In this document: positions 3,864-31,014 of the stretch, piece after piece
Layout of the letters: every line of letters starts with the position of its first letter
Position numbering within the stretch: the first letter of the stretch is position 1
IMG/VR virus record: IMGVR_UViG_3300009184_000029
Coordinates: 1 to 64,000 of that record
Strand: one strand, 5' to 3'
Length of the DNA: 64,000 bases
The notes under the pieces: generated by a model
Seen by the model: only the letters and a program-made list of their open reading frames with translations
Told to the model about the DNA's origin: nothing
The model's database searches: none
Made by a program: the position numbers and the translations under genes

Positions 3864-4970
3864 ATGAATAAATTAGACCAACAATACCAAACATTACTCC
3901 AAACCATTTTAGATTTTGGGGTGGAGAAGAAAGACCGAACTGGTACAGGAACCAAATCAATTTTTGGTTATACCATTCGTCATAATATGAAAGATGGTTT
4001 TCCACTCCTCACAACCAAGAAGATGGCTTGGAAAACTATGGTAACTGAATTACTATGGTTTTTAAGAGGTGACACCAACATCAAATACCTTGTTGATAAC
4101 AATTGTCATATTTGGGATGGTGACGCTTATAAGAGGTATTCGGTTATTGCTGGAGTATCAACCCAAGTTGAGACATTAACACAAGAAGAATTCATCAACA
4201 AAATCAAAACAGATGATGAGTTTGCTAAGAAGTGGGGTGAATTAGGTCCAATTTATGGTAAGCAATGGAGAAGGTGGCATACAGGTTGGGATGTAGTTGA
4301 AGATAAGAGTAAAGAGGCTGGCGTAAGAAGGATTGAGTATGGGATAGACCAAATCGCAAACCTAATCAACGACCTTAAAACAAATCCAGACTCAAGACGA
4401 TTAATGGTTAATGCTTGGAATGTAGGTGAGATAGACCAAATGGTTCTTCCACCTTGTCATTATGGATTTCAAGTTTATACAAGAGAGTTGAGTTTGGAGG
4501 AAAGATTATTATTGGCAGATAAAATTTGTAAAGAAATTAGACAAGATTTATATACATACTCTTTCAATAACCCAATATATACTGGCGGTATAGACCAAAG
4601 ACCAGATGATGTAGAAAGACATCATTTACTAAATGACTTAAACATTCCAACAAGAGCAATCTCTTTAATGTGGAATCAACGTTCAGTAGATACATTCTTG
4701 GGTTTACCATTCAACATTGCAAGTTATGGTTTGTTATTAACTATGATTGCAGATGAAATGAATATGGTACCTGATGAATTGATTGGTAACTTGGGTGACA
4801 CTCACATTTACCTAAATCATATTGAACAAGCAAAAGAACAGATTGGTAGAGAACCATTTCCACTTCCTAAAGTAATAGTTCAAGATGGAATATTCTGTAG
4901 TTCAGTCAGTGATGTTATTTTGGAAAACTACCAATCACAACCATCAATTAAGGCACCGTTAAGTAATTAA
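3864..4970 (+). CDS. thyA: Thymidylate synthase ThyA with two in-frame insertions
   Basis: DRTGTGT, FPLLTTKK, ELLWFLRG, LPPCH catalytic Cys, QRSVD-FLGLPFNIASY, GDTHIY-NH. Confidence 0.97.
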   Translation: MNKLDQQYQTLLQTILDFGVEKKDRTGTGTKSIFGYTIRHNMKDGFPLLTTKKMAWKTMVTELLWFLRGDTNIKYLVDNNCHIWDGDAYKRYSVIAGVSTQVETLTQEEFINKIKTDDEFAKKWGELGPIYGKQWRRWHTGWDVVEDKSKEAGVRRIEYGIDQIANLINDLKTNPDSRRLMVNAWNVGEIDQMVLPPCHYGFQVYTRELSLEERLLLADKICKEIRQDLYTYSFNNPIYTGGIDQRPDDVERHHLLNDLNIPTRAISLMWNQRSVDTFLGLPFNIASYGLLLTMIADEMNMVPDELIGNLGDTHIYLNHIEQAKEQIGREPFPLPKVIVQDGIFCSSVSDVILENYQSQPSIKAPLSN

Positions 4971-7646: not shown

Positions 7647-7820
7647 ATGAATAATGAAGAATTGGTGGAAGAACTATTATGGGCTTCTCATAAAAAGGGT
7701 ATTGGTAATGAAGTTTTAGATAAGGCGAAAGAGATTCAAACCTCAATAAGAATACCTTGGGTTGATTGTGTACAAAGGGCATACATGGAATTGGATGTGG
7801 ATAACTATGAAATGGATTGA
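7647..7820 (+). CDS. Small hypothetical protein MNNEELVEELLWASHKKG... (57 aa, not in ORF track)
   Basis: Manual translation; fills the gap between 7644 and glnII on the same strand. Confidence 0.55.
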   Translation: MNNEELVEELLWASHKKGIGNEVLDKAKEIQTSIRIPWVDCVQRAYMELDVDNYEMD

Positions 7821-7828
7821 TTAAAAAT

Positions 7829-8848
7829 ATGATATACAAATTAGAATATATTTGGTTAGACGGATATACACCTGAACCAAACATCAGAAGTAAAACAAAG
7901 ATTTATAATTCAGAATCTGAACCAAACTTAGAAGACTTACCAATTTGGAGTTTTGACGGTTCGTCAACTAAACAAGCTGAGGGTAAATACTCTGACTGTA
8001 TGTTGAAACCTGTTAAGATGATTCAGGACCCACAAAGAAAAAATGGTTATTTAGTTCTTTGTGAAGTATTAAATCCCGATTTGACACCTCACTCATCAAA
8101 TCACAGAGCTCAATTAAAAGATGACTCAAATACTTGGATTGGATTTGAACAGGAATATTTCATTTATGATGGAGAGTTACCTGTTGGACATAAAAAGGAA
8201 CTTATGAAACCACAAGGTGAGTATTATTGTGGGATTGGTAATGGTAATGTTTCAGGAAGAAACATTGTTGAACATCATTTGGATGTTTGTCTATCTTCAG
8301 GTCTTAATTTAACAGGTATAAATGCTGAGGTTGCACTTGGACAGTGGGAATTCCAAGTTATGGGAAAAGGAATATTAGATTCTTGTGACCAACTTATTCT
8401 TTGTCGTTTCTTATTACAACGATTAGGTGAGACTTACGGTGTGAAAATCAATTACCACCCAAAACCACTTCACGGAGATTGGAATGGTTCAGGACTACAC
8501 ACAAACTTCTCAACCAAGTATATGAGAGAAGTTGGAGGTAAACCTTACTTTGATATGTTATTCTTTGCAATGGAACAAAACCACTCAAAACACATTGAGA
8601 ACTACGGTTCAGATAATCAAATGAGATTAACTGGTGAACACGAAACACAATCTATTGATAAATTCAGTTGGGGTGTGAGTGACAGAGGAGCATCAATTAG
8701 AGTACCACAAACTACTGAGAAAAGTAATTGGAAGGGTTATATTGAAGATAGAAGACCTGCATCAAACGCCAATCCATATTTAATTGTGAAATCGATTTCA
8801 GAAACTGTTAATATGGTTGAGATGAATTTTAAAATGGTTAATGTGTAA
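7829..8848 (+). CDS. glnII: Glutamine synthetase type II
   Basis: KLEYIWLDG, IWSFDGSST, GFEQEY, GINAEVALGQWEFQ, DWNGSGLHTNFST, RLTGEHET, DRGASIRVP, EDRRPASN. Confidence 0.95.
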   Translation: MIYKLEYIWLDGYTPEPNIRSKTKIYNSESEPNLEDLPIWSFDGSSTKQAEGKYSDCMLKPVKMIQDPQRKNGYLVLCEVLNPDLTPHSSNHRAQLKDDSNTWIGFEQEYFIYDGELPVGHKKELMKPQGEYYCGIGNGNVSGRNIVEHHLDVCLSSGLNLTGINAEVALGQWEFQVMGKGILDSCDQLILCRFLLQRLGETYGVKINYHPKPLHGDWNGSGLHTNFSTKYMREVGGKPYFDMLFFAMEQNHSKHIENYGSDNQMRLTGEHETQSIDKFSWGVSDRGASIRVPQTTEKSNWKGYIEDRRPASNANPYLIVKSISETVNMVEMNFKMVNV

Positions 8849-9288
8849 TGGAGTTAATAACGACAACAATAATGAAAAAATCTGACGAGGGTGTTCACGG
8901 TAACATTTTTGGAGGAACTTTGATGTCTCTAATTGATGACTCGGCTGCATCATATGCTGCACAGATATGTGACACTTCAAGAATAGTGACAATTAAGATT
9001 GACGAGTTATTATTTAAGAGTCCTGTTAAAGTTGGTAGTTTACTTAAAATTTATGGTAAAGTTGAAAAGTTCGGGACCACCTCAATCAAATTGTATATTG
9101 AGGTACGTAAACATAATGTTCATACTGGTAAACAAGATGCTGTAACACAAACATTTATCACATTTGTGAGGATTGATGGGGATGGTAAAGCGATACCAAT
9201 CCACGAGTACGTTAAAGTGAGGTATTATGACAGGATGGAAAAATTTGGTAGAGGTCTTTTATCTTTAGAAGAGAAAGAAAAAGTTTAA
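8848..9288 (+). CDS. Acyl-CoA thioesterase (hotdog fold, YciA-like)
   Basis: HGNIFGGTLMSLID, VTIKIDELLFKSPVKVG, FVRIDGDGK. Confidence 0.88.
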   Translation: MELITTTIMKKSDEGVHGNIFGGTLMSLIDDSAASYAAQICDTSRIVTIKIDELLFKSPVKVGSLLKIYGKVEKFGTTSIKLYIEVRKHNVHTGKQDAVTQTFITFVRIDGDGKAIPIHEYVKVRYYDRMEKFGRGLLSLEEKEKV

Positions 9289-9291
9289 AAT

Positions 9292-9594
9292 ATGACACTT
9301 GAAAAAAATGAATTATTTTTTTTGAAATGTGTTAAAGAAAAGGTTTTAGAAAAACACAATCTACCTTACCAATGTTTGTCAATTGAATTTCATGATGATA
9401 GTTTATATAAACTATATTTTATTATGAAAAACTTCCCAATGGAAGTATATCTATATCGATATGACATTATTGATGAAATTGAAAGCTTGATTAAATTTTA
9501 TTGTAAGGTGACAACTAATAAAAAAATAATGCATATGAAAGTTTACGTTGATTACAGAAGTCCTAAAGGTAATCTTTTAAATTTTGTAATATAG
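9292..9594 (+). CDS. Hypothetical protein
   Basis: ORF. Confidence 0.5.
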   Translation: MTLEKNELFFLKCVKEKVLEKHNLPYQCLSIEFHDDSLYKLYFIMKNFPMEVYLYRYDIIDEIESLIKFYCKVTTNKKIMHMKVYVDYRSPKGNLLNFVI

Positions 9595-9606
9595 TTTGAT
9601 ATAAAC

Positions 9607-9903
9607 TTAGACCGTAAAATCTAAATATATCTCATCAAATTGATATCCTAAAGAATTAATCATTGAAGAAATTAAATCCTTTAGAAATTTCTTTAACCTA
9701 CCAAGACGACCATCCTTAACTTCCAATTTAACATGGATATAAATGTTACCAAACACTATTTTGTTAGAATATGATTTAGGTAGACAATCGATTTTTACTA
9801 TTTCGTATTTTGGTAATGGAAATCCATGATTTAATTCATAAGACTTTAAGTATTTACCTTCAATCTTTTTAATACTATTAATAAAAAATTCACCGTATGT
9901 CAT
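9607..9903 (-). CDS. Hypothetical protein
   Basis: ORF; divergent from 9944 with TATTTATA box on minus strand. Confidence 0.55.
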   Translation of the reverse strand: MTYGEFFINSIKKIEGKYLKSYELNHGFPLPKYEIVKIDCLPKSYSNKIVFGNIYIHVKLEVKDGRLGRLKKFLKDLISSMINSLGYQFDEIYLDFTV

Positions 9904-13959: not shown

Positions 13960-14523
13960 ATGAAAGATTTAATAAAAAAAATATTAAAAGAAGAGACGGA
14001 TATTATGGACTCTTTTACTTATTTTGAAACGTCAAAGGGTTCAAAGTATATTATAAATGACAAAGGACAATTAAGAAGATGGAAGTCTTATCACGAAAAC
14101 ACATCAGGTGAAGATATGGGATTACACTCTTGGAGTGATTTATCATTCTTTGTTGACCCATCTTATTATAGTAGTGTAAGTTCTTTTGAACAATTAAATA
14201 CTAACAAAGGATACAAAGTTGCTATAAGTAAAGATGCTGAAGGTAAAATGTTTTACATGATTTTTGATAACAATCAATGGAGACCTGCGAAATGGGAAGA
14301 TGCGTTCCCTACATATGTGAAAAACAATCCTGAATTAAAAAATAAGGTATTAAGTTGGAGATACGTAAGAGAACCTAAAATTGGGTATAATGTTGTTGAT
14401 GTCTCGTTCAAAAAACAAGGTTCAACACAACTATCAAGTTTTCACATAGGTAATACCGTATCAAGAATTGAGGATAGAATACCTGATGATGAAAGAAATT
14501 TATTTACTGGTAAACGTTCTTAA
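13960..14523 (+). CDS. Leader-bearing protein (MKDLIKKILKEE)
   Basis: Leader class B; start reassigned to the leader Met. Confidence 0.65.
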   Translation: MKDLIKKILKEETDIMDSFTYFETSKGSKYIINDKGQLRRWKSYHENTSGEDMGLHSWSDLSFFVDPSYYSSVSSFEQLNTNKGYKVAISKDAEGKMFYMIFDNNQWRPAKWEDAFPTYVKNNPELKNKVLSWRYVREPKIGYNVVDVSFKKQGSTQLSSFHIGNTVSRIEDRIPDDERNLFTGKRS

Positions 14524-14842
14524 CTTTAATGTCACTACGTAAATAATCAGGTGCCGCCCAAATATCAGATACTAAAATTTCTTTACTATTTAATAACCAT
14601 TTCATTATTAAATCTAAACAGTAAGTTTTTTTGATTGAGAAAAACTTACAGATTTCATTAACTAACATATAGTTAACTTCACAAAAACCATCTTCTTTAT
14701 CTATACATATTTGTGAAAATTCATCACCAACTGAATTTACAAAATATATTTTATTTGGACTATCTAAAGTAATTAAATCTTGGTTATTTAAGTATTTTAA
14801 AATAAACGATTCTATTTGTGATTCTTTAATTATTATTCTCAT
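14504..14842 (-). CDS. Paralogue-family protein (MRIIIKESQ)
   Basis: Aligns by eye with 21969, 24100, 24409 (YLNNQD...YFVNS.GDEF.QI...FFS). Confidence 0.75.
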   Translation of the reverse strand: MRIIIKESQIESFILKYLNNQDLITLDSPNKIYFVNSVGDEFSQICIDKEDGFCEVNYMLVNEICKFFSIKKTYCLDLIMKWLLNSKEILVSDIWAAPDYLRSDIKVKNVYQ

Positions 14843-14843
14843 A

Positions 14844-15245
14844 TTATACAAAGACTACACTTTTTATACCCATAACATTATTTTCGGGGAAATATTGACT
14901 ATAAATATCCTGTATTATGTACTTACCATGTATTGACCATAATGGGTGAGGGAGAAATGACTCAAATAATTTATCTAATTCACGACTATAATAAATTTCA
15001 CCATTACGACTTATCTTATCTAAATATCTGTATGGTACGAACAATATTAATATTTTACCATCTGAACCAAGTAGAGCAATTTTATTGTTATCATCTTCAT
15101 TATATGATTTAATCATATTTGAGATTAAAGGAATCAGTTTATTACTTAGTTTAGAGTACTGATGCTCATATTCCTTATCACGCCAATCCCTCTCAATTTT
15201 TTCAGAAATTAATTTATATTGTGATTCGGTGATGATGTATTTCAT
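14844..15245 (-). CDS. Leader-bearing protein (MKYIITESQ)
   Basis: Leader class A; TATTTATA 5 nt upstream on minus strand. Confidence 0.7.
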   Translation of the reverse strand: MKYIITESQYKLISEKIERDWRDKEYEHQYSKLSNKLIPLISNMIKSYNEDDNNKIALLGSDGKILILFVPYRYLDKISRNGEIYYSRELDKLFESFLPHPLWSIHGKYIIQDIYSQYFPENNVMGIKSVVFV

Positions 15246-15264
15246 ATGATTATAAATACAAGTA

Positions 15265-15272
15265 TATTTATA
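15265..15272 (+). promoter_or_regulatory. Putative late promoter box TATTTATA (divergent partner at 15251-15258 on minus strand)
   Basis: Each box lies 5 nt from the ATG of its gene (15278 plus, 15245 minus). Confidence 0.6.
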
Positions 15273-15277
15273 ATAGT

Positions 15278-15892
15278 ATGAACCTAAAGGAATCCATAAG
15301 AAGAATATTAAAAGAAGAAAGGAATGTTAAAAACACATTAGTGAAACTTATTGATGAGTTTGGTATTGAACAAGCCTCCAAAATTACCGCGATTTCTATC
15401 ACAAAATTAGTTCAACTATCTGATGTAAAAATTAATAATGTAATTGCTAATAAACTATTAGTTGAAAATTTAAACAAGGGTAAATTAAAAGATACCTATA
15501 AACAATTCAAGATAGAATCAAGTATAAATGATGTTTTTTATTGGCAAGGTGAATTACAAACAGGACACTATACTGATAAATACACTGAATCAATTACAGC
15601 AATGGCGACACCATTTTGGGATGGTGAAGATTATACTCCTGTTGAGATTGAGTGGTTTACTCTATTGGACAGAAGTAAACCAAATGAAGTGAAGATGGTT
15701 GTTGAGACAGAGGGTTATGGAAGTTTTTACCAAACATTTAAAGATAAAACAAGTTTTGATAGTGTAGAAGAGTTATTTAATTGGTATGAAAAAGTTTATT
15801 TACCTGGTGTATATAACATAATAATGCACTTATTACCTGAAGTGCATATTTTTATTGATGAAAAATTAGATGAGGATAGAAGAGACAATTAA
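15278..15892 (+). CDS. Leader-bearing protein (MNLKESIRRILKEE)
   Basis: Leader class B; body resembles 24774. Confidence 0.7.
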   Translation: MNLKESIRRILKEERNVKNTLVKLIDEFGIEQASKITAISITKLVQLSDVKINNVIANKLLVENLNKGKLKDTYKQFKIESSINDVFYWQGELQTGHYTDKYTESITAMATPFWDGEDYTPVEIEWFTLLDRSKPNEVKMVVETEGYGSFYQTFKDKTSFDSVEELFNWYEKVYLPGVYNIIMHLLPEVHIFIDEKLDEDRRDN

Positions 15893-16316
15893 AAGAATAT
15901 TAAGAGAGGAAACTCAGATACCTTCACCGATTAGAAGAAGGGTGTCAAATTCGGATATCGAAGAAGCGTTCCTTATTTCATTAGATAGAATAGACGATGG
16001 ACGAAAATATAGTAAAATGTCAGTAATGAAAAATGTATCATTACAGACATTTGCCAAAATGGTAATTGATGATATGATTTCGGATTTAGAACAAGAATAT
16101 TTTAATGATGAGAACAGGATTTATTTTGATAATGACGAAACATATCACGAAGAAATTAGAGTACCACTTATGAACTATTTTAGTGATAGAATTAAGAAAA
16201 GATATGGCTCAAAAGACGAAAAAATTGTGTGTCAGGAATGCGGATGGTCGTGGAATTTATCTGATGGAGGAGATGACCCATATACTTGTCATCAGTGTTA
16301 CCCCGAAAACATGTAA
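15870..16316 (+). CDS. Leader-bearing protein with C-terminal zinc ribbon (CQECG...CHQC)
   Basis: IKRILREE leader; IRRRVS motif shared with 19597; CxxC-x14-CxxC. Confidence 0.7.
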   Translation: MRIEETIKRILREETQIPSPIRRRVSNSDIEEAFLISLDRIDDGRKYSKMSVMKNVSLQTFAKMVIDDMISDLEQEYFNDENRIYFDNDETYHEEIRVPLMNYFSDRIKKRYGSKDEKIVCQECGWSWNLSDGGDDPYTCHQCYPENM

Positions 16317-16400
16317 ATTAATATGAAACTACAAGATAGGATTATACAAATTTACAATAAAAGAGAGTGGACTTAGGACCGCTGTAGTTTAGGCTACATT

Positions 16401-16433
16401 AACCCCATTGAATTCGCTACTCAGTGGGGTTTT
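16401..16433 (+). terminator. Terminator-like hairpin, part of a larger structured intergenic element
   Basis: ACCCCATTGA / TCAGTGGGGT stem, 9-nt loop, followed by TTT. Confidence 0.65.
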
Positions 16434-16445
16434 CATTTGAACAAG

Positions 16446-16453
16446 TATTTATA
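16446..16453 (+). promoter_or_regulatory. Putative late promoter box TATTTATA heading the cassette operon
   Basis: 5 nt before ATG 16459. Confidence 0.6.
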
Positions 16454-16458
16454 ATAAA

Positions 16459-17349
16459 ATGAATCTACAAGAGAATATACAAAGAATTAAAGAAATGATG
16501 GGACTCATTACCGAAGAAAAAAAAGATAAAACCATTGTTCTTTTGGATGGTACCTCGTCTGCTGGTAAATCACATACACTTAAACATTTAAAGGCCGTTC
16601 CGTATTACGAAGCGAATGACCCAAACCAATTGGTTGTTATTGCAACTGATGATTTTAGTGGAACAGGTGAAGGTGAAGGTAAAGAAGGTGAAGAAAGAAG
16701 ATTAAAATTGGACCACCCCAATATAAGACAATGGGCGAAGGAAAATGAAGATGCTGGAGTTGTATCAGGAAAATATCGTAAAGATGGTAAAGATGTACCT
16801 AAAAATCCATACGAGAAAGAATATATTGAAGGGACTGACCCAAGATTATGGTATGTGGCTCAAGAAATTAAAACAGGTCCTTGGAAAAAAATTGTAATAG
16901 ACGATATTGGTAAAGGAGTATTACAATACTTACCTGGTGTTAAATTAAAATATATTCTGTTACACACTCCATTACATGTTCTTTTAAAGAATGTCTACGA
17001 AAGAAATGAAAGGGCGAAAAATGATAAGAACTTCAAAAATGATGATAGGGATATTAAAATGGTGTTAGACCAATACTCGGAGAAATATGAGGCAACAAAG
17101 TCCAAACCTGATATTACTAAAGGGGACCCAAAAACAATATTAACTAAGAGAGGTATTACAGATTTACTTGAGACAAATGGTGTGAAGAATAAACACATAG
17201 ATGAGTTTTTAAATAGTATAAATTTAACTAAAGATGGAGATTACTACATCAAAGTTAGGGATTCATATTTGACACCTGAAACACAATTAATTAATGTTGA
17301 TAGTAAAAGAACTGTCTATTTAAAAGATATTGATAAAGAATTAAAATGA
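16459..17349 (+). CDS. Leader-bearing P-loop kinase (chloramphenicol phosphotransferase-like)
   Basis: MNLQENIQRIKEMMGLITEE leader; LLDGTSSAGKS Walker A of CPT-like type; IVIDD; lid RNER. Confidence 0.7.
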   Translation: MNLQENIQRIKEMMGLITEEKKDKTIVLLDGTSSAGKSHTLKHLKAVPYYEANDPNQLVVIATDDFSGTGEGEGKEGEERRLKLDHPNIRQWAKENEDAGVVSGKYRKDGKDVPKNPYEKEYIEGTDPRLWYVAQEIKTGPWKKIVIDDIGKGVLQYLPGVKLKYILLHTPLHVLLKNVYERNERAKNDKNFKNDDRDIKMVLDQYSEKYEATKSKPDITKGDPKTILTKRGITDLLETNGVKNKHIDEFLNSINLTKDGDYYIKVRDSYLTPETQLINVDSKRTVYLKDIDKELK

Positions 17350-17981
17350 GTTTAATACAAACCATAAAAAAAATATTAAGGGAAGAGGTCAATGAGGCCT
17401 ATTTAAAACCAAGTGAAAAATCCGAGAAATTTATTTTGGATAGATTGAATGCTATGGCTTTAGGTGCTGAAATATACCACCTTGAAAGTTATAAAACAAG
17501 ACATGATTTTGAGTTTTGTAAAAATGGAAAACAAATAATGAATCTTGCATTGTTCTTTGAAGAAACTGACGATAACACCCCAACGTCTGAAAGAAAATTT
17601 GAATCTTCAACATTATCAATACAAGAAGATTTTGTTGGTGGGATATTAAAGACTTTTCCTGTTAGAAGAAATTATCTTTATTACATGATTGAAGAATGGT
17701 TTGAGGATACTTTTTTAAGTGAAATCTCAAATATGATAGGTAGAAATGATATATCTGTTGAAGAATTATCATTTAATGATAGGACATATGCGTGTGTCCC
17801 ACCAATTAAAGAAGTACCTGAAGGAGTTACTCAAGACGAGATGATTAAGGTTATTATGAACAATACACTATGGCGTAAAAAAGATTTATTAGCGTTAGAA
17901 GAAAGAGAACCTGGGTCTATAGAATTTTTTTATTTACAAAAACTTCGTAATAATGAGGTTAATAGATTAGATAATAGATAA
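17346..17981 (+). CDS. Leader-bearing hypothetical protein (IKKILREEVNE)
   Basis: Leader class B; overlap with previous gene. Confidence 0.65.
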   Translation: MSLIQTIKKILREEVNEAYLKPSEKSEKFILDRLNAMALGAEIYHLESYKTRHDFEFCKNGKQIMNLALFFEETDDNTPTSERKFESSTLSIQEDFVGGILKTFPVRRNYLYYMIEEWFEDTFLSEISNMIGRNDISVEELSFNDRTYACVPPIKEVPEGVTQDEMIKVIMNNTLWRKKDLLALEEREPGSIEFFYLQKLRNNEVNRLDNR

Positions 17982-17982
17982 T

Positions 17983-18396
17983 ATGAACCTACAGGAACAC
18001 ATAAGAAGAGTATTAAGGGAAGAACTATATTCTCCATCAGGAGATGAATATACACCTGGCAAATTTGTTGTTCATAAATCAAATCCTATATGGAGAGAGA
18101 ACATAGAACTTACAGGTTTACAAACGTATGTGGGTGATTGTTACCAACAACATGTGGGAGGAGATGTGGAATGTAAACCATCAATATTTGCAACAGACTC
18201 ATTAAATAAAAAACAAATGTTTGATTCAACCTATGATGATGATATATGGGTTATTGATACAGAATGTGCGGGAGTTACTTGGTATAAAGATAAACATTTT
18301 GAGGGTGGAGATTACAAACACCATATAGTTACATTTGATGACATATCGACTGATTGTTTAAGATTAATACATAAGGGAACAGGGAAAAGTAATTAA
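17983..18396 (+). CDS. Leader-bearing protein, possible ADP-ribosyltransferase fold
   Basis: MNLQEHIRRVLREE leader; VVHKS...IELTGL...SIFAT...WVIDT pattern. Confidence 0.5.
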   Translation: MNLQEHIRRVLREELYSPSGDEYTPGKFVVHKSNPIWRENIELTGLQTYVGDCYQQHVGGDVECKPSIFATDSLNKKQMFDSTYDDDIWVIDTECAGVTWYKDKHFEGGDYKHHIVTFDDISTDCLRLIHKGTGKSN

Positions 18397-18397
18397 T

Positions 18398-18841
18398 ATG
18401 AATCTACAAGAACAAATATCAAGAATACAATCAATGATGGGGGTTATTAATGAAGGATTACACGACACATCATGGGAAAATGATGAGGGCGATAAAGTTA
18501 CTTTAATAGACTTACTAAATGCAACCAAAGACATACCCGTTAAGAAAATTTCTGTGAACAAGATTAAGTCCAAGTTATTAACGTGGGGTGATGATGAAAA
18601 AGAAATTGCCAAAATAGAAAAGTCTAACTTAAAATATCCGATATTAATATTTGTTGATGACAATAATAAATTCATTTCAATTATAGATGGTCATCATAGA
18701 GGGCAAAAAGCCGTAAAACACAAATTAAAAAAAATCAAAGCAAAGTTAATACCAATTAACTCTTTGCCCAAAGATATAAAAAAAGTATTTAATCGCATGA
18801 ATCAAAATGAACCTACAAGAAGAAATATCAAGAATACATGA
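18398..18841 (+). CDS. Leader-bearing ParB/Srx-like domain protein
   Basis: MNLQEQISRIQSMMGVINE leader; KYPILI...IIDGHHR motif. Confidence 0.7.
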   Translation: MNLQEQISRIQSMMGVINEGLHDTSWENDEGDKVTLIDLLNATKDIPVKKISVNKIKSKLLTWGDDEKEIAKIEKSNLKYPILIFVDDNNKFISIIDGHHRGQKAVKHKLKKIKAKLIPINSLPKDIKKVFNRMNQNEPTRRNIKNT

Positions 18842-19328
18842 GATGATGGGAGTTATATCTGAAAAGTTAGAAGATATACAAGGAACACCATTATACCATA
18901 AGACCTCAACAAGTAGAGGTATTGATATTATTAATACGGATTCATTAAGGGGGGTTTTACCATCAGGTGATTATTTAGGTAACGACAAGAGATTAGCAAA
19001 CACCAAAACACAAACAGCAATATCATTCACAAGAGATAAAAACTGGCAACCAAATAATACAATTGGTGTGGGACTTGATTCATCATTGGAAGATACGGGA
19101 ATAACATTTGTGGTGGATAGAGATAAGTTAAAGACAAAGTATAAGATAGAACCATTCAATTATCACGGAATTGACCCTGATTCAGAATATAAAGAAAAGT
19201 TTAATGAATTAGAAGACCGTGTAATGACAAATGAAATATATCCACTACACAAATATGTTATAGATATAATTTACACAGGGGATAATCCTGAAGTACAAGA
19301 AATAATAGATAGTTATTTAAATAGATGA
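18807..19328 (+). CDS. Leader-bearing protein, possible ADP-ribosyltransferase fold
   Basis: MNLQEEISRIHEMMGVISE leader; PLYHKTS...AISFTRD...ELEDRV pattern. Confidence 0.55.
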   Translation: MNLQEEISRIHEMMGVISEKLEDIQGTPLYHKTSTSRGIDIINTDSLRGVLPSGDYLGNDKRLANTKTQTAISFTRDKNWQPNNTIGVGLDSSLEDTGITFVVDRDKLKTKYKIEPFNYHGIDPDSEYKEKFNELEDRVMTNEIYPLHKYVIDIIYTGDNPEVQEIIDSYLNR

Positions 19329-19600
19329 ACTTACAAGAACAAATATCAAGAATACAATCAATGATGAGGGTTATTAATGAAAACTCGGTAGAAGATAAAA
19401 TTAATGACTTATCAGAAAAGGAAAGAACATTCCTTAAAGATTTCGGAACTGACCCCACATTAAGAAAACTAATGACATCTCAAGAGATTAAGACGGCAAA
19501 CAAATTAGTTAAGAAAGGTATGATGGAAAAAGGGACATCTGATGATAATAAATCAAATGTAATTTATTATGTTGACTCATTTGTATATAAAAGACTATGA
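19325..19600 (+). CDS. Leader-bearing small protein (possible winged helix)
   Basis: Leader nearly identical to 18398; LSEKERTFL...ANKLVKKGMM...YYV. Confidence 0.6.
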   Translation: MNLQEQISRIQSMMRVINENSVEDKINDLSEKERTFLKDFGTDPTLRKLMTSQEIKTANKLVKKGMMEKGTSDDNKSNVIYYVDSFVYKRL

Positions 19601-20598
19601 ACCTACAGGAGCACATAAGAAGAGTATTAAGAGAGGAATTATCCCCAAGGATAAGAAGAAGACTTTCTAATGATGAAATGGAAAATGAATTTCTTGAATC
19701 TTTTGAAGGTGCTTATCGTCTTACAAAAAACAGAAAGGTTTTAAGTTCACATTTTTTAGATGAGTTAGTCTACACAACAATAACCTTTATGATGGATGGG
19801 GTGCATTGGAGATTTGTTAGCACATTACCTGAAGATGAATTTTGGTATGATGATATACATCAAGAATTAGAAAATCATTATAAAGACAGAATTATACAGA
19901 TGTATAATGAAAAACAAGGAATTAATGAATCAATATTAAGGGAAGAAACTAAGTTACCTGTTTATATTAGAAGAAGGGTAAGCCCTGGTGACCTTGAGTG
20001 GTTGATTAGGGATGTTAAAATTTCTTTAAGCAGGGGAAAGAATAAAAGTGATGCCTTATATGATGCAATTCAAAATCTTATTTCATCAAACAGAGAACTA
20101 TTAAAAGATTATGATATGTTCCAAGATGTGTACGCATTTGACGAACCACTAATTAGATATATCAATTCAAAATTGGACGAGGAACCGTTAAATGAATCAA
20201 TATTAAGGGAAGAAACCTCACGTCAAAATAACTTAAAAGATATACTCTCAGATGTTGGTGTTTATAATACTTCAAAAATGGTAGGAGGTATTAAAAATCT
20301 GTATAAATTACTTGGTTTTGTTGGGACTCAAGAGGAAATGATTTTAATTGTTAACACATTAATTAAACATGATATTCCGATTATAGAAAATATATGTGAT
20401 TTTAAAATTGTACCAACTCAAAACTCATTAAAACTATATGTGGAAATACCAAAATATTATCCTATTCATCCTGATGATTATTACCCGAACAGACAAAAAG
20501 TATTACAAGCGAGAGATAACATAAGTACCATGATAAATAAAATGGGAAATGGGTTAGTAAAAGGACATGTTGTAGAAGTTAGTATAGGTAAATGTTAA
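19597..20598 (+). CDS. Leader-bearing tripartite protein with two internal NESILREET motifs
   Basis: 26-bp exact DNA repeat AATGAATCAATATTAAGGGAAGAAAC at 19924 and 20191. Confidence 0.7.
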   Translation: MNLQEHIRRVLREELSPRIRRRLSNDEMENEFLESFEGAYRLTKNRKVLSSHFLDELVYTTITFMMDGVHWRFVSTLPEDEFWYDDIHQELENHYKDRIIQMYNEKQGINESILREETKLPVYIRRRVSPGDLEWLIRDVKISLSRGKNKSDALYDAIQNLISSNRELLKDYDMFQDVYAFDEPLIRYINSKLDEEPLNESILREETSRQNNLKDILSDVGVYNTSKMVGGIKNLYKLLGFVGTQEEMILIVNTLIKHDIPIIENICDFKIVPTQNSLKLYVEIPKYYPIHPDDYYPNRQKVLQARDNISTMINKMGNGLVKGHVVEVSIGKC

Positions 20599-21296
20599 AA
20601 CAAAGAATATTAATGGAAGGGATTGAGGAAATTGGTAATTTTACCAAATTAGAAAAAGTAATAATGGAATTTATCAATCGACAAATTCCTAAAGAAAAGT
20701 TACCTGAAAACTTTCATGGTATTGCTGTTGATGTATATAACACTCAGTACGGAAAGAGTTGTAAAATAACTTTTTTAATGAAAAAACCTTTTTCAGAAAA
20801 AGACTCTGATGATTTACATGATATGAGTCTAAATGCCAAAAATTTAGTTAAGAGTTTTTTTAACAAAAAGTTTCCATATGGTGTAACTACAGGGACATCG
20901 ACTATTAAACACTACAAAGAAACAAAAGATTGGTACGATAGTCAAAAGGACATTAAAGAAATGAATCTACGACAAACTGTAAAAAGAGTATTAAGTGAAA
21001 CGACCAAAGAAGTATTGTGGTTAAGAAGGAGACTACATTCACATGAGGTAATGAGAGATTTGAAAGAAACGGTTATTGGTAACATAGAATTCTTGGATGG
21101 TCCTTGTGGATATGATACAAGTAAGGAATGGTTTGATTCCATAATGAAAACGTCTGTGGAAAACTTTATCAGTCACTGGGAAGAATTGTATGATGCTGAT
21201 GATATGGTCACCTTAGATGATTTTGTATATGAGATTATTAATGATGAATACGGGGATATGATTAGAAAGGCATATAAAAATAGAATATGTGATTAA
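20592..21296 (+). CDS. Fusion ORF with an internal in-frame leader MNLRQTVKRVLSET at 20961
   Basis: Leader class B Met in frame mid-ORF. Confidence 0.6.
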   Translation: MLKQRILMEGIEEIGNFTKLEKVIMEFINRQIPKEKLPENFHGIAVDVYNTQYGKSCKITFLMKKPFSEKDSDDLHDMSLNAKNLVKSFFNKKFPYGVTTGTSTIKHYKETKDWYDSQKDIKEMNLRQTVKRVLSETTKEVLWLRRRLHSHEVMRDLKETVIGNIEFLDGPCGYDTSKEWFDSIMKTSVENFISHWEELYDADDMVTLDDFVYEIINDEYGDMIRKAYKNRICD

Positions 21297-21302
21297 TTAA
21301 TA

Positions 21303-21602
21303 TTAATCAATAATCAATAAATTCTTAAATTCAAAACCTGTCTTACTCTCAACCCAATCTCCGATAATATTCATCGTTTCACCTCTATCTAAACTAAAAA
21401 AGGAGGATATCGTTTTTACAAAATCTTTTTTTATAAAACAATATGTTTGTTTGAAGGTGGATATTATGATTTCACGGTTTTCAATATTATAATTGTTCCA
21501 AAAGTGATAATCACCATCATTGTTTGTAACATAAAAGTTTTGTATATTAAGATAACGAAAGATTACTTTCTCTAACTGTGATTCTGTTATCAAGTATTTC
21601 AT
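21303..21602 (-). CDS. Paralogue-family protein (MKYLITESQ)
   Basis: Leader A; IFRYL...ISSFFSL...IIGDWVE. Confidence 0.75.
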   Translation of the reverse strand: MKYLITESQLEKVIFRYLNIQNFYVTNNDGDYHFWNNYNIENREIIISTFKQTYCFIKKDFVKTISSFFSLDRGETMNIIGDWVESKTGFEFKNLLIID

Positions 21603-21955
21603 ATATATAAATCAAGAAATTGTTCTAAGGTAATACCAAGAGGTCGAATACCTAAAAAGTTCATAAATTCAGATTCATCATAACTATCACCTCTATCATC
21701 AAGAATCAATGGGTGGTTTGAACTATAATTCATTTGATATAACACCTTATGATTATCATCCAATTCTATAAGATACATCGGACCATAGTTATCCATCAAA
21801 CTTCTCCTTAATAGACCATCGTAAGTAAAATGGAAATCAAAATCATTCAGTATTCCACGTATACTTGGGTCAAGCTCCACACGACCTGTGAGGTCAATAT
21901 TAAACTTATCCTTAATAAATGTTTTTAATTTAGATTCGGTGATTAATAGTTTCAT
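21599..21955 (-). CDS. Leader-bearing protein (MKLLITESK)
   Basis: Start reassigned; AATATTTATAA box upstream. Confidence 0.65.
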   Translation of the reverse strand: MKLLITESKLKTFIKDKFNIDLTGRVELDPSIRGILNDFDFHFTYDGLLRRSLMDNYGPMYLIELDDNHKVLYQMNYSSNHPLILDDRGDSYDESEFMNFLGIRPLGITLEQFLDLYI

Positions 21956-21968
21956 GTTATTATAAATA

Positions 21969-22301
21969 TTAATTAGACGGAATCTGCATCCACTCAGATT
22001 TAATATTATTGGCCCACAAACAAAAATCAATATCTACCTTTAAGGTCTCCCCAACCCATCTACCGATAGTTTCCCTAGCATCATAACCTTGCATAGAAAA
22101 AAAAGAAGCAACCTCACCAATTAATCCTGTATATATGACACATTTACTATCCTTTTTAAAATATCTAATCTGAGCATATTCATCACCTTCTGAATTTACA
22201 AAGTATACACCATCACCCTTCTCAATCTGAATGAAGTCCTGATTATCCAAGTACTTAAAGATTATTCTATCTAATTGTGATTCTGTAATTAAGTATTTCA
22301 T
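21969..22301 (-). CDS. Paralogue-family protein (MKYLITESQ)
   Basis: Close paralogue of 24409; ends WV+12aa+10aa+MQIPSN. Confidence 0.8.
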   Translation of the reverse strand: MKYLITESQLDRIIFKYLDNQDFIQIEKGDGVYFVNSEGDEYAQIRYFKKDSKCVIYTGLIGEVASFFSMQGYDARETIGRWVGETLKVDIDFCLWANNIKSEWMQIPSN

Positions 22302-22308
22302 AATTTAA

Positions 22309-22587
22309 TTAATCCGAGTGTAAGAATTTAAGTAATGCTCTAATATATTGGGAACGTTTCTCATAGAATTCAGTTTCATTACCATATTGTAAAAACTCCT
22401 CACGTCTATGTCTATCAATGAAATCTTCAATTAATCCATAAATGTGGTCATCCCTGTCAGCAGAATCTTCAAAATCTTCATCATCCATAGCGTAGTTATA
22501 ATCATCCTTAAGCGCTTTCAATTCATCTATAGAAAACCTTCTAAGTAAAAATATGTCTAACTGTGATTCGGTGATAAGGTATTTCAT
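22309..22587 (-). CDS. Leader-bearing acidic protein (MKYLITESQ)
   Basis: Start reassigned; overlapping TATCTTTG and TATTTATA boxes upstream. Confidence 0.65.
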   Translation of the reverse strand: MKYLITESQLDIFLLRRFSIDELKALKDDYNYAMDDEDFEDSADRDDHIYGLIEDFIDRHRREEFLQYGNETEFYEKRSQYIRALLKFLHSD

Positions 22588-22689
22588 TATATATAAATAC
22601 AAAGATAGGGACAAAGTTGAACTATATATATTGGGTTAATAATTTCATAAGAATATGATAATATGGTTTGTTCTTTACTTTCTATACTT

Positions 22690-23400
22690 ATGGAAATGGA
22701 ACTATCAAAGTTATTAACCATTGTTATACCTTGTAAGAACGAGGGGATAACTATCAATCAAACTTTATCGATATTAAATTTCCAAAATGGTATTGATGGT
22801 GTTAAGGTTATTGTTTCCGATTCTTCGGATGATGGAACAACATATCATTTGGAGAACAGAAACAGGGACTATTTCAATCTTGACATCATTCAGGGTGGGT
22901 TACCTAGCAAAGCAAGAAATAATGGAGCAGAACGAGCTGAAACTCCGTTTGTATTGTTTATGGACGCCGACATGATGATACTTGATACAAACTTACTTCA
23001 GGAGTGTATGGAGATGATGAGAAGAGAAAGGTTAGATTTGTTGACAACAAAGGTAAGAACAACAAACGGAAAATACAATTATGTGTTCAGAACATTTGAT
23101 TTGATTCAGGGGATAACAAGATATATCACACCATTTTGTTTAGGTGGGTTTATGTTAATGAGAAAGTCAACATTCATAACACTAAACGGATTTGATGAAG
23201 AGGCACAGGTTGCTGAGGATTACTTACTATCAAAACAGATAAAGACAAATAGATTTAAGGTATATAGAAAAACCATATTCACATTACCAAGAAGGTTTGA
23301 GAGTAAGGGATTATGGTATATGACAAAGTTAATGATAATGTCATTCCTTAACAGAAATAACAAGGAGTTTTTCTCCGACCACAATTCATATTGGAAATGA
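22690..23400 (+). CDS. Family 2 glycosyltransferase
   Basis: TIVIPCKNE, VIVSDSSDD, KARNNGA, VLFMDAD, GGFML, AED. Confidence 0.9.
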   Translation: MEMELSKLLTIVIPCKNEGITINQTLSILNFQNGIDGVKVIVSDSSDDGTTYHLENRNRDYFNLDIIQGGLPSKARNNGAERAETPFVLFMDADMMILDTNLLQECMEMMRRERLDLLTTKVRTTNGKYNYVFRTFDLIQGITRYITPFCLGGFMLMRKSTFITLNGFDEEAQVAEDYLLSKQIKTNRFKVYRKTIFTLPRRFESKGLWYMTKLMIMSFLNRNNKEFFSDHNSYWK

Positions 23401-24107
23401 GATACAGAACAATTATAATGAGTGATTTACATCTTGGCGCAAAACAATCACAGACGGACAAGATAATAAAGTTCTTGGAAGAAAACCAAACGGACAAGTT
23501 AATACTAAACGGAGATATCATAGATGGTTGGGCACTCAAAGGTAGTGGTAAGTGGACAAAGGATTGCACCAAGATATTCAGGAAGTTTATGAAGATGTCG
23601 GAGAAGGATACAAAGGTAATTTATATAAGGGGAAACCACGATGACTTCCTAAAAGATTTCATTCCGTTTAAGTTAAACAATATAAGGATTGTAAGGAAGT
23701 ATGTACATGAAGGAATGGACGGAAGAACATACTTTTGTTTTCACGGGGATGTATTGGATTTCGTTATAATGGAAGCAAGATGGTTGGCAGTAATCGGTGG
23801 ATGGTCATATGATATTGTCATTAAGTTTAATACTCTATACAACAAAATAAGAAAGTGGTTTAACTTACCATATCATTCACTGGCAAATACAATAAAACAA
23901 TCTGTTAAAGGGGCGATTAACTTTGTATCTGATTTCGAAGAAAACGCGAAAGGTTTAACAAAACAGAAGGGATATGATGTTGCGGTGTGTGGACATATTC
24001 ATCACCCGAAGTTAGAGAATGACTATATGAATTCAGGAGACTTTTGTGAGAACTCTACATGTCTTGTAGAAGATTATAATGGGGAGTGGAAAATAATTAC
24101 TATATAA
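23391..24107 (+). CDS. UDP-2,3-diacylglucosamine hydrolase-like metallophosphoesterase (LpxH-like)
   Basis: SDLHLG, LNGDIIDGW, RGNHDD, FHGD, CGHIHHP, YMNSGD. Confidence 0.85.
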   Translation: MEMRYRTIIMSDLHLGAKQSQTDKIIKFLEENQTDKLILNGDIIDGWALKGSGKWTKDCTKIFRKFMKMSEKDTKVIYIRGNHDDFLKDFIPFKLNNIRIVRKYVHEGMDGRTYFCFHGDVLDFVIMEARWLAVIGGWSYDIVIKFNTLYNKIRKWFNLPYHSLANTIKQSVKGAINFVSDFEENAKGLTKQKGYDVAVCGHIHHPKLENDYMNSGDFCENSTCLVEDYNGEWKIITI

Positions 24108-24396
24108 TTATAACTTCTTTAACTCTTCTATCCAAAGTATTCTCAACCCATCTAGCGATAACATATTTAGCATTATCAAATTCTATAGAGAAGAAATTTT
24201 TAATCTCATCAATTAACTCAAAACTTATTACACAGTCACCACTTCTAAAGTATTGGATTAATGAGTCCTTATATTCATCACCCTCTGAATTAACGAAGTA
24301 TATTGTATTTCCTTTTTTAATCTGAATAAAGTCCTGATTGTTCAAGTATATGAAGATTACTCTATCTAATTGTGATTCTGTGATTAAGTATTTCAT
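24100..24396 (-). CDS. Paralogue-family protein (MKYLITESQ)
   Basis: Close paralogue of 24409; ends RWVENTLDRRVKEVIII. Confidence 0.8.
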   Translation of the reverse strand: MKYLITESQLDRVIFIYLNNQDFIQIKKGNTIYFVNSEGDEYKDSLIQYFRSGDCVISFELIDEIKNFFSIEFDNAKYVIARWVENTLDRRVKEVIII

Positions 24397-24408
24397 TATT
24401 GATAAATA

Positions 24409-24741
24409 TTAGTTAGATGGTATTCTCAACATATATCCACGGTGGAAAGATACAAAAGGGGTGTCAGTGACCCTCATTTGGAGGGTATTCTCAACCCACC
24501 TACCAATAACTTGTTCAGAATCAGATTCATCCAAAGAAAAGAAGGAAGAAATTTCATCCATTAATTTGTAATATATCCCACACCAACCATCATCTTTATC
24601 ATATCTGATTTGAGCATATTCATCACCTTCTGAATTGGCGAAGTATATATTATCACCCTTTTCTATCGGAATAAAATCTTGGTTGTCAAGATACCTAAAG
24701 ACTATTTTATCTAATTGTGATTCGGTGATAAGATATTTCAT
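24409..24741 (-). CDS. Paralogue-family protein (MKYLITESQ) whose 3' end overlaps a CRISPR-like repeat-spacer unit
   Basis: Ends RWVENTLQMRVTDT-PFVSFHRGYM-LRIPSN. Confidence 0.8.
   Translation of the reverse strand: MKYLITESQLDKIVFRYLDNQDFIPIEKGDNIYFANSEGDEYAQIRYDKDDGWCGIYYKLMDEISSFFSLDESDSEQVIGRWVENTLQMRVTDTPFVSFHRGYMLRIPSN
24413..24495 (+). CRISPR. Minimal repeat-spacer-repeat unit with a type VI-B-like direct repeat (degenerate partial repeat, ~30-nt spacer, full repeat)
   Basis: Full repeat 24460-24495 GGTGTCAGTGACCCTCATTTGGAGGGTATTCTCAAC with ACCCTC/GAGGGT stem; partial repeat ending GGTATTCTCAAC at 24430; intervening spacer 24431-24459/60. Confidence 0.6.
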
Positions 24742-24773: not shown

Positions 24774-25229
24774 ATGAATCTACAAGAAAACGTAAGAAGA
24801 ATATTAAGGGAAGAATACACCGCAAAACAAATGAAGTTATTAACTCTGGCAAGTAAGGTGGGGTTACTAAAGGTAGGGAAAATGCTCGGAGGTGTAGAAG
24901 ACCTTATAAATGTGTTAGGTGATGAGTTCCTTACAACAAACAATAAGATTAAGATTATTAAGGAAATAGTAGAAACAACCGATGATGAATATATTACACT
25001 AATGGACATGAATGAAAATCCAATAGTTCTCAAGGATGAAGACGGTAAACTTTCACAAATAGAAATGATATATAGAGAAGATGTTGCAGTGTTCCATTAT
25101 GGTGGATATAAATACTCACAAGATTTAGGTGAAAGTTATATGTCTTATGAAGAACTACCAAAATATGTATTAGATGATATTTTTGATATGGTATTAGATT
25201 TCTATACAGGTACTTTAGAGAATAACTAA
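24774..25229 (+). CDS. Leader-bearing protein (MNLQENVRRILREE)
   Basis: Leader B; GLLKVGKMLGG segment resembles those in 15278 and 19597. Confidence 0.7.
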   Translation: MNLQENVRRILREEYTAKQMKLLTLASKVGLLKVGKMLGGVEDLINVLGDEFLTTNNKIKIIKEIVETTDDEYITLMDMNENPIVLKDEDGKLSQIEMIYREDVAVFHYGGYKYSQDLGESYMSYEELPKYVLDDIFDMVLDFYTGTLENN

Positions 25230-28536: not shown

Positions 28537-28863
28537 ATGAAAAAAGTTGTAAGATTAACTGAAAGAGATTTAATAAGACTTGTGGAAAATGTGGGTTCAG
28601 TCTATCTTAATAGGAGAACCAAATATATAGATGAAATTCTTGATGAGGTAATATCTGAAATAACTAATGGTGAATTTCATTTTGAGGATTATGATGATTA
28701 TAAGTCGGAGGTTATTTGGACAACTTTGTCTACGATGGAGTATGACGAGGGACGTGATTTACCAAAAGAATATATTGAGGATTATTTTTCATTTATGGAG
28801 AGACCTGAGTTTATTGATAAAATTAAGAGGGGATATTCTATGTTTAAGAAGAGTAGAAAATAA
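28537..28863 (+). CDS. Leader-bearing protein (MKKVVRLTERDL)
   Basis: Leader class C; GTATTTATT upstream. Confidence 0.7.
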   Translation: MKKVVRLTERDLIRLVENVGSVYLNRRTKYIDEILDEVISEITNGEFHFEDYDDYKSEVIWTTLSTMEYDEGRDLPKEYIEDYFSFMERPEFIDKIKRGYSMFKKSRK

Positions 28864-30702: not shown

Positions 30703-31014
30703 ATGAAATATATTATCACCGAGTCTCAGAATTTACAAATGAGGAAAGTTAATTTCTTGAAGAACTATATTCAGAACTTATTATCTAAGTACAAATGGTT
30801 TAAAGGTGATGTTAAGATAGATGTAACGACTTGGGATGCATCAAATAAGACATATCCTTTATATAATATTATACTAAATACAGGTGGTCGTAGTTATCAT
30901 GCTTATGATGAGGGTTTAGATATTGAGAATAATATTAATACCATGTTTGGTTTATTATTTCCTAAAGATGAAAACGGAGATTCTAGTGCGGTATGGGATG
31001 TTCTTTTTGTATAA
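30703..31014 (+). CDS. Leader-bearing protein (MKYIITESQ)
   Basis: Leader A; GTATTTATT upstream. Confidence 0.7.
   Translation: MKYIITESQNLQMRKVNFLKNYIQNLLSKYKWFKGDVKIDVTTWDASNKTYPLYNIILNTGGRSYHAYDEGLDIENNINTMFGLLFPKDENGDSSAVWDVLFV

Follow-up and report, generated by a model that had tools for sequence, protein, structure and literature searches.

A hypervariable array of leader-headed gene cassettes in a giant T4-like freshwater phage

Introduction

Repoila et al. reportedly described in 1994 that the ip loci of T-even phages are polymorphic. The internal proteins of T-even phages are diverse anti-defence proteins, and their leader is the only part that they have in common (PMC3012670, PMC12373910). 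IPI, IPII, IPIII, and Alt reach the scaffolding core by means of propeptides of 7-19 residues, which are removed afterwards; gp21 cleaves after L/I-X-E, and the packaged Alt protein of T4 has an ADP-ribosyltransferase-superfamily fold (PMC9026906). Here, we describe a comparable locus at 15278-21296 of a 64,000-nucleotide stretch of the IMG/VR virus record IMGVR_UViG_3300009184_000029 (positions 1 to 64,000; hereafter the window), in which genes arranged in tandem begin with short coding leaders.

This locus and the T-even internal-protein loci (PMC9026906, PMC3012670, PMC12373910) are alike in several respects. Both belong to T4-type phages with a gp21-family protease, and in both a short leader ending in L/I-x-E is the sole part common to otherwise unrelated small proteins. 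Both are variable among close relatives, and both carry a payload of the ADP-ribosyltransferase fold (Alt in T4). The leader sequences of the present locus are, however, distinct and fall into at least four classes. There are three internal proteins in T4 and about 10 known across the T-evens, whereas here 10 genes lie in tandem and roughly 30 or more are present per genome. In-frame multi-module fusions with internal site remnants are found here, packaging and cleavage are proposed rather than known, and the host is probably a member of Bacteroidota instead of Escherichia.

The promoter-early-stem-loop (PeSL) elements of other T4-like phages (PMC2839356, PMC4122927) are the second point of comparison. 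In both systems, short conserved repeats around ORFan cassettes serve as homology patches at which the phage recombines, and indels between close relatives cross over in the repeat. One terminator-promoter composite lies inside the present array. The repeat here is mostly coding (the leader), which leads to in-frame protein fusions, whereas PeSL swaps are intergenic; the PeSL promoter is a sigma-70 early promoter, whereas a late-type TATTTAT box is found here, with only one stem-loop and box in the array. The PeSL authors likewise draw a comparison with integrons (PMC2839356, PMC4122927). As in integron arrays, the cassettes of this locus point in one direction, mostly lack promoters of their own, follow a common promoter, and differ between strains, but exchange here occurs by homology within coding leaders.

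Two further systems show a partial likeness. In the giant phages phiKZ and SPN3US, many different proteins inside the head carry a short motif at which they are cut after Glu, and the big capsid packages many protein species (PMC7411985, PMC5694885, PMC9026906), as is proposed for this array; their propeptides are nevertheless long and family-specific, their motif is S/A/G-X-E, and tandem arrays with a shared short leader are not known for them. Polymorphic toxin and effector loci also combine a conserved trafficking N-terminus with diverse C-terminal enzymatic domains and recombine at the conserved part. In contrast to those loci, the leader here is only 14-19 residues long, no immunity genes are evident, the locus is in a phage genome, and delivery by the capsid is proposed instead of delivery by a secretion system. 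The locus is a variant on the theme of T-even internal proteins and PeSL shuffling rather than a separate type of system.

Source genome

The window covers the first 64 kb of a record of 222,829 bp, which is about 76% complete and has a G+C content of about 30%. A profile search of the record gave a match to the Gp23 capsid protein (E = 8.8e-64) and to a prohead protease of the gp21 type (Peptidase_S77, PF03420, E = 2.6e-26; phrog_207 head maturation protease, 1.6e-46). Genes for the large terminase, the tail sheath, and the tail tube were also identified, and a UvsX-like recombinase is encoded. The nearest deposited phage is the Flavobacterium phage vB_FspM_immuto, although the capsid gene shows only 70% nucleotide identity to it; therefore, the host is probably a member of Bacteroidota. 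Neither A nor B leaders (see below) were found in this nearest cultured phage. The source sample and related samples are mostly freshwater metagenomes. The phage is a giant (jumbo) T4-like freshwater phage, and is uncultured.

Organization of the array

Ten open reading frames (ORFs), all on the + strand, begin at 15278, 15870, 16459, 17346, 17983, 18398, 18807, 19325, 19597, and 20592, and are referred to below by these positions. They abut or overlap by 1-35 nt, and the sole gap, of 143 nt, is at 16317-16458. The elements of the array are as follows.

15266-15273, + strand: TATTTATA box, a late-promoter-like motif 4 nt 5' of the 15278 ATG
15278-15892, + strand: cassette 1, B2 leader MNLKESIRRILKEE and a 190-residue acidic cargo
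15870-16316, + strand: cassette 2, B2-type leader MRIEETIKRILREE and an "IRRRV" module with a C-terminal Cys4 ribbon
16323-16376, + strand: leader remnant, an 18-codon frame of 17 residues, MKLQDRIIQIYNKREWT, and a stop
16401-16440, + strand: terminator-like stem-loop with a U-run (dG -15.7 kcal/mol, z -3.6)
16446-16453, + strand: TATTTATA box, 6 nt 5' of the 16459 ATG, heading the 16459-21296 run
16459-17349, + strand: cassette 3, B1 leader and a P-loop (GTSSAGKS) kinase-like cargo
17346-17981, + strand: cassette 4, B2-type leader MSLIQTIKKILREE and a cargo with no fold assigned
17983-18396, + strand: cassette 5, B2 leader and a small ADP-ribosyltransferase-superfamily domain (Tpt1/KptA and DarT type, predicted)
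18398-18841, + strand: cassette 6, B1 leader and a basic ParB-like (DGHHR) domain; absent from deletion strains
18807-19328, + strand: cassette 7, B1 leader and a cargo with a predicted DarT-like ADP-ribosyltransferase fold; absent from deletion strains
19325-19600, + strand: cassette 8, B1 leader and a 72-residue basic cargo
19597-20598, + strand: cassette 9, B2 leader and three fused modules
20592-21296, + strand: cassette 10, truncated leader at the start and full leader MNLRQTVKRVLSE inside, at 20961-20999

Nine of the ten genes have a class B leader of 14-19 residues at the N-terminus. The exception, 20592, starts with the truncated leader MLKQRILME and has the full leader inside. The B1 leader, MNLQEQISRIQSMMGVI(N/S/T)E, heads 16459, 18398, 18807, and 19325, and the B2 leader, MNLQEHIRRVLREE with its variants, heads 15278, 15870, 17346, 17983, and 19597. 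The leaders of 17983 and 19597 have 92% identity over 39 nt, every difference is synonymous, and both encode MNLQEHIRRVLREEL. Those of 18398 and 19325 are alike over 57 nt with exactly three mismatches and an identical core of 35 nt. The leader DNA pattern is found seven times in the record, each time on the same strand; in the control orientation it does not occur.

When the leaders were removed, the cargos were mostly unrelated to one another. However, similarity remained for the three modules of 19597: modules 1 and 2 matched the 15870 cargo (E = 4.5e-7 and 0.007), and module 3 matched the cargo of the gene at 24774 (E = 3e-5). Two internal leader remnants, NESILREET, are found in 19597 at 19924-19949 and 20191-20216; their 26 nt are identical, and only the distal half of the leader is kept. 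With its three modules, this ORF looks like a polyprotein. The leader remnant at 16323-16376 is probably the scar of a lost cassette.

An earlier note on this DNA had described about ten co-oriented genes, each with a class B leader, near-identical leader DNA in the two pairs mentioned above, unrelated cargos, and a box heading the 16459-21296 run. Alignment bore out both leader pairs, and the box was located at 16446-16453, with a second copy before 15278. The count and orientation of the genes also stand, but the leader of 20592 is truncated, and the lack of relationship applies to most cargos, not to the modules of 19597.

Loss, replacement, and movement of cassettes

The comparison with related phages makes it very probable that cassettes have been deleted, replaced, and moved in nature, with breakpoints inside the leader DNA. 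The relatives were aligned on a conserved gene pair located to the right of the array:

22663-24107, + strand: anchor pair, family-2 glycosyltransferase and metallophosphoesterase, conserved in relatives

The anchor pair has 66-88% amino acid identity in the relatives. The number of B-leader genes beside it ranges from 0 to 13, their cargos differ for the most part, and distant relatives on contigs of 128-294 kb have wholly different arrays at the same anchor. Homologs of 16459 (82-83% amino acid identity) have different neighbours in L035, L036, and L037 (such L numbers, among them also L059, L061, L063-L065, L067, L163, and L185, are labels for related contigs). In L036, a homolog of the cassette 1 cargo has no leader (3444-4436), and the cassette 2 cargo sits behind a B1 leader (9280-9651).

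Near-identical strains were found by exact-protein look-up. Contigs L061, L063, L064, and L065, from four samples other than that of the window (two JGI and two ENA samples, assembled by two pipelines), lack 927 bp that correspond to cassettes 18398 and 18807. They are 97.6-99.7% identical to the window from 17577 or 17803 to 18454 and then continue directly with 19325 onward. When the leaders and contigs were aligned, the bases at the junction were of the 18398 type on the left and of the 19325 type on the right. This means that the crossover took place in the 35-nt identical core. In the Logan contigs of sequencing run X4, depth is zero at 18600-18799 and 19000-19199, that is, over both deleted cargos. 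An X4 contig also shows an in-frame loss of 267 nt (89 codons, in the middle) between the two 26-nt internal remnants of 19597.

The leader of 19325, the right-hand partner of the 927-bp deletion, is also the switch point in L059. This contig is 99.66% identical to the window up to about nt 43 of that leader; it then has five other cassettes and rejoins the anchor genes at only 77.6% identity. In L067 (476-1111), the cargo of 17346 is present with 93% nucleotide identity behind a different front half of the leader, the homology beginning 17 nt after the ATG, and module 1 of 19597 occurs 7 kb away as a stand-alone gene. L163 has cassette 18398 alone. Exact look-ups of the proteins 17346, 15870, and 19325 returned only the arrangement of the window, in sister samples.

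A census of all related contigs retrieved was made for 15000-21500. Twelve of the 13 internal ends of strong homology lie between -13 and +56 nt from a leader ATG, and the remaining one lies at the internal leader remnant at 19924. Several joints in Logan contigs that go back might have been circles and were not counted: their sides are short (23-46 nt), with unassigned sequence in between, at a likeness of 90%.

The earlier note had proposed that the leader repeats serve as recombination joints in an integron-like locus without an integrase, an idea that fixed gene content and order among relatives, or breakpoints away from the leader repeats, would have contradicted. Neither was seen: gene content varies, and the deletion, the replacement, and all 13 homology ends map to leaders or a remnant, which supports the proposal. 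The absence of an integrase also held: the 222.8-kb record (about 76% complete) gave no match to the tyrosine recombinase family PF00589 (IntI-type). No recurrent cassette-bounding pair of attC-type inverted repeats was seen in a scan of 14000-23000 either. With neither an integrase nor attC, a strict integron reading was rejected, and "integron-like" holds only as an analogy. The exchanges look like homologous recombination between short stretches of shared sequence.

The leader as a protein signal

Conservation of the leader was analysed in non-identical copies, 46 of B1 and 34 of B2, taken from the window and from relatives. The amino acids are invariant, whereas their codons change: L3 is encoded by CTA or TTA, R9 by AGA or AGG, and G15 by four codons. 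Synonymous heterozygosity lies close to the value expected from genome codon usage: 0.34 (expected 0.45) for B1, 0.25 (0.43) for B2, and 0.41 (0.46) for class A. Hydrophobic residues at positions 3, 7, 10, 14, and 17 form a heptad-like pattern. The sequences of the leader classes, at least four in number (A, B1, B2, and C), are distinct, and every class terminates in [L/I/V]-x-E; [L/I]-x-E is the cleavage motif of gp21.

The cargo families of 18807 (107 homologs) and 17983 (187 homologs) were sampled in depth. The same cargo is seen behind B1, B2, class C, or other leaders and in in-frame fusions. In all these versions, a Glu and a hydrophobic residue two positions earlier are kept just before the cargo; the last leader residue of 18807, E19, is invariant in 49 sequences. 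In AlphaFold models, the leaders form helices of low confidence (pLDDT 45-57) that are separate from the cargo domains, which are modelled well. In the model of 17983, for example, residues 3-12 form the leader helix with a pLDDT of 55, and the fold begins at about residue 19.

The leader peptide is under purifying selection, and the leader is mainly a protein signal. The earlier note gave no reason for the conservation of the leaders. Because selection acts on the peptide, recombination at the leaders is most likely a by-product of this shared signal, as it would be at the T-even internal-protein loci.

Cargo domains

Searches of the ten array proteins against Pfam, PHROGs, and PDB sequences gave only sub-threshold matches, except that 18398 matched a ParB-like PHROG (phrog_17560, 1e-10; ParB-like, 9e-4). 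The structural model of 17983 matched KptA/Tpt1 in a Foldseek search of the PDB (E = 2.6e-4, probability 1.0, TM-score about 0.5) and DUF4433 and RNA 2'-phosphotransferase entries in AFDB. That of 18807 matched DarT (E = 1.5e-2, probability 0.98, TM-score about 0.5) and DarT clusters in AFDB (4e-6 to 1e-3). Both cargos are thus assigned, from their predicted structures, to the ADP-ribosyltransferase-superfamily fold of the Tpt1/KptA and DarT type. Residues H31, S33, and R38 of 17983 and Y30, H31, S73, T75, E134, and E136 of 18807 are invariant.

Putative transcription signals

Across the genome, the 45-nt stretches before ORF starts are enriched 23-fold in the TATTTATA 8-mer. The TATTTAT box precedes the genes for the large terminase, the prohead protease, the tail sheath, the tail tube, and other large structural proteins. 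It is present upstream of 15 of 28 leader genes, compared with 43 of 234 other ORFs, and is often only 4-6 nt from the ATG. From this distribution, we infer that the box might be a late-type promoter of the phage and the leader genes late genes. Late-made enzymes of the kinds described above would be easiest to explain if they were carried into the next cell, like Alt of T4.

Between the two transcription units of the array, the order is leader remnant, stem-loop with U-run, and second box. The composite GGGGTTTT(N0-25)TATTTAT occurs four times in the window (1981-1996, 16426-16452, 33148-33175, and 37197-37225), whereas 0.06 are expected. It resembles the terminator-promoter units of the PeSL type in other T4-like phages, but with a late-type box. 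Sigma-70-like sites are not enriched (58 compared with 70.8 expected), and scans for sigma-70 promoters and simple terminators gave no excess over shuffled sequences.

Proposed function of the leader

The leaders are proposed to be capsid-targeting propeptides because of the parallel with T4, namely the L/I-x-E end, the gp21-type protease, and the cleavage site of gp23. In the T4 record, IPII and IPIII start with MKTYQEFIAE/A and IPI with MKTFKEF...STITE/A (the slash marks the site). The capsid protein of the present phage has HLINE60/AA, which aligns at the sequence level with FLTE65/AE of T4 gp23, and therefore the L/I-X-E specificity of the protease is probably conserved.

According to this model, the leader would dock the cargo into the scaffolding core late in infection, and the prohead protease would then cut the leader off after the Glu. 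Once freed, the cargo would enter the next host together with the injected DNA and act in host takeover or against host defence. Since every cassette must keep the same leader, the 40-60 nt of leader DNA would offer short homology patches at which UvsX-type recombination could cross over, always in frame. An incoming cargo would gain a start codon, expression, and a packaging tag in a single step. Where several modules are fused in one ORF and only the half with the cleavage site remains of the leader, the product would be split into separate proteins.

Several points weigh against this model. With one gap introduced, class B has about four residues (M, Q, E, and I) in common with the T4 capsid-targeting sequence, a weak likeness; class A (MKYLITE) has the MK start and the ITE end of IPI. 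The residue after the leader Glu is E, S, N, or T, whereas it is usually A in T4. About 30-35 leader genes per genome are several times the number of known T-even internal proteins. The late timing is drawn solely from the co-occurrence of the box with structural genes. A predicted complex of the protease with a leader peptide had a score of 0.00, which is not evidence either way. The array was not matched, as DNA or with two of its proteins, in 50,697 deposited phage records, and the evidence for recombination comes from short-read metagenome assemblies rather than single molecules. Finally, the first seven codons of the leader are nearly fixed and unusual: codons 2, 3, and 7 are AAC (74% compared with 25% in the genome), CTA (65-75% compared with 8%), and ATA (88-100% compared with 34%). 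Because these codons are so nearly fixed and far from genome usage, an added constraint at the mRNA or DNA level on the first 21 nt or so is likely.

On balance, we consider it slightly more probable than not that the locus is a hypervariable payload array in which the leader is both a capsid-targeting propeptide of the T4 internal-protein type and a recombination joint. For the targeting and cleavage part taken separately, we put the chances at about even. A wider proposal, a "protein-level integron" in a clade of uncultured phages of about 290 kb, in which the leader would be capsid-targeting signal, protease site, and recombination site at once, any gene recombined in behind the leader would immediately become an expressed, packaged, and injected effector, and each phage would ship about 30 or more different enzymes into the host along with its DNA, is more tentative and falls somewhat short of even chances.

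It should be mentioned that the head module contains an ORF of 237 residues (G000:C1:72629-73342) with 5.9 [LI]xE motifs per 100 residues, compared with 1.3 genome-wide, and no database match. It lies between a 609-residue ORF (70776-72605, assigned as portal by position only) and the prohead protease (C1:73940-74659). This ORF is a candidate prohead core protein, as such a density would be expected of a core protein that is cut up.

Alternative explanations

The fixed codons at the start of the leader raise the question of whether the leader is a portable translation-initiation region for near-leaderless or coupled mRNAs, with ordinary cytoplasmic proteins as cargos. The absence of any Shine-Dalgarno-like sequence upstream of a cassette, the promoter box at 4-6 nt from the ATG, and the bias of codons 2, 3, and 7 away from genome usage would fit such a role. 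However, amino acid conservation reaches codon 13-19 despite synonymous turnover, four leader classes with different nucleotide sequences all have the [L/I]-x-E end, the in-frame internal remnants retain only the distal half (SILREE), where no initiation occurs, and the hydrophobic pattern at 3, 7, 10, 14, and 17 is heptad-like. We regard this explanation as unlikely, although a translation-initiation role in addition may apply to the first seven codons. The leader might instead be a docking or oligomerisation helix that gathers the cargos on a common cytoplasmic hub or host target, with no packaging or cleavage: it is predicted as an amphipathic helix apart from the cargo and is interchangeable on many cargos. 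Such a helix leaves unexplained the invariant Glu and the [L/I/V] two residues before it at the leader-cargo border, the box common to leader and virion genes, and the retention of just the site-like half of the leader in fused ORFs; accordingly, its probability seems low.

The other two alternatives concern the shuffling itself. If the genes were ordinary tandem-duplicated paralogs that had diverged except at the N-terminus, the leader would have no special role in recombination. The relationship of 15870 to modules 1 and 2 of 19597 and of 24774 to module 3 points in this direction, and the class A genes are full-length paralogs. This seems very improbable, however, in view of the different cargo folds (P-loop kinase-like, ParB-like, and ADP-ribosyltransferase-like), the occurrence of one cargo behind different leader classes, and the concentration of breakpoints in leaders. 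Shuffling might also be produced by assembly, if contigs of short reads were misjoined at the repeated leaders. Every variant does come from a short-read metagenome assembly, Logan contigs break or branch with depth spikes at every leader, and several of the joints that go back have short sides with unassigned sequence in between. Nevertheless, the same 927-bp deletion junction recurs in the assemblies of four different samples, which were produced by two pipelines (JGI and ENA), and because of this repetition an artefact is disfavoured. In addition, run X4 independently lacks depth over both deleted cargos, the identical core is just 35 nt, and the 128-294-kb contigs of distant relatives hold different arrays at the same anchor. 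We judge an artefact to be a most unlikely source of the observed variation.

Other leader genes and distribution

Roughly 30 or more leader ORFs of all classes are present in the record, concentrated at 11-50 kb. Those next to the array are listed below.

14504-15245, - strand: two class A leader genes (MKYIITESQ, MRIIIKESQ), divergent, on the left flank
21303-22614, - strand: four class A leader genes (MKYLITESQ, MKLLITESK), converging on the end of the array
24774-25229, + strand: outlying B2-leader gene with its own box, cargo related to module 3 of 19597

Class A leaders (MKYLITESQ, with the I-T-E end at residue 7) are also found at 24100-24741 on the - strand, 30703-31014, and 34170-34457. 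They head a family of paralogs of about 100 residues and unrelated proteins, and in relatives as many as 10 or more copies lie next to the anchor pair named above. At 37618-38811 on the + strand, an M23 peptidase and GH19/endolysin-type protein has a doubled class A leader, MKLIITETQLKYLITEGKE; this tagged cell-wall hydrolase would fit a virion-borne or injected enzyme. The class C leader of the record is MKKVVRLTESDL. Class C (MKKVVRLTESDLIKLVKRVI.E) occurs at 28537-28863, 32687-33112, and 37242-37616 and at G000:C1:80676-81185 on the - strand. One class C copy and an adjoining gene of the KKVLKETEE type are located inside the structural gene block near 80 kb. Other genes of the window are a thymidylate synthase at 3864-4970, to which the Pfam model matched in two stretches (a possible insertion), a glutamine-synthetase-like gene at 7817-8848, and a tRNA-Arg(TCT) at 56830-56906.

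The leader DNA pattern is present in at least 119 IMG/VR stretches, many of them on contigs of 200-335 kb. Among 185,579 genomes of prokaryote species, there was a single match, to one 3.3-kb contig of a metagenome-assembled genome (MAG), and the pattern is absent from deposited phages. This contig, L185 (CAZYEM010000367.1), has two leaders and is assigned to the MAG of an uncultured Bacteroides, which may reflect mis-binning of a phage fragment or else point to the host phylum. From 161 sampled stretches, 427 B-leader ORFs with 319 distinct cargos were collected. They form about 100 cargo groups, a rough figure because single-linkage clustering produced one inflated cluster of 98. No literature matching the leader strings was found.

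Significance

Packaging aside, the locus is a clean natural case of recombination breakpoints confined to a coding repeat of 40-60 nt. The leader also provides a sequence handle with which hundreds of candidate host-takeover or anti-defence proteins can be harvested from freshwater metagenomes. If the wider, more tentative proposal of a protein-level integron is true, the phages would share a cargo pool of some 100 families, among them Tpt1/DarT-like ADP-ribosyltransferases, kinases, and nuclease-like domains, and the multi-module ORFs would encode polyproteins that the prohead protease cuts up. Just as the T4 capsid-targeting sequence serves in T4, these leaders are candidate tools for bringing foreign proteins into the capsids of phages with Bacteroidota-type hosts. 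The locus takes the ideas developed for T4 internal proteins and PeSL elements well beyond the enterobacterial T-evens. If the leader does act as a packaging tag, no known set of injected phage effectors would come near the leader genes of these phages in size. The same tag would then provide both the function and the homology for in-frame cassette exchange, showing how such effector sets evolve.

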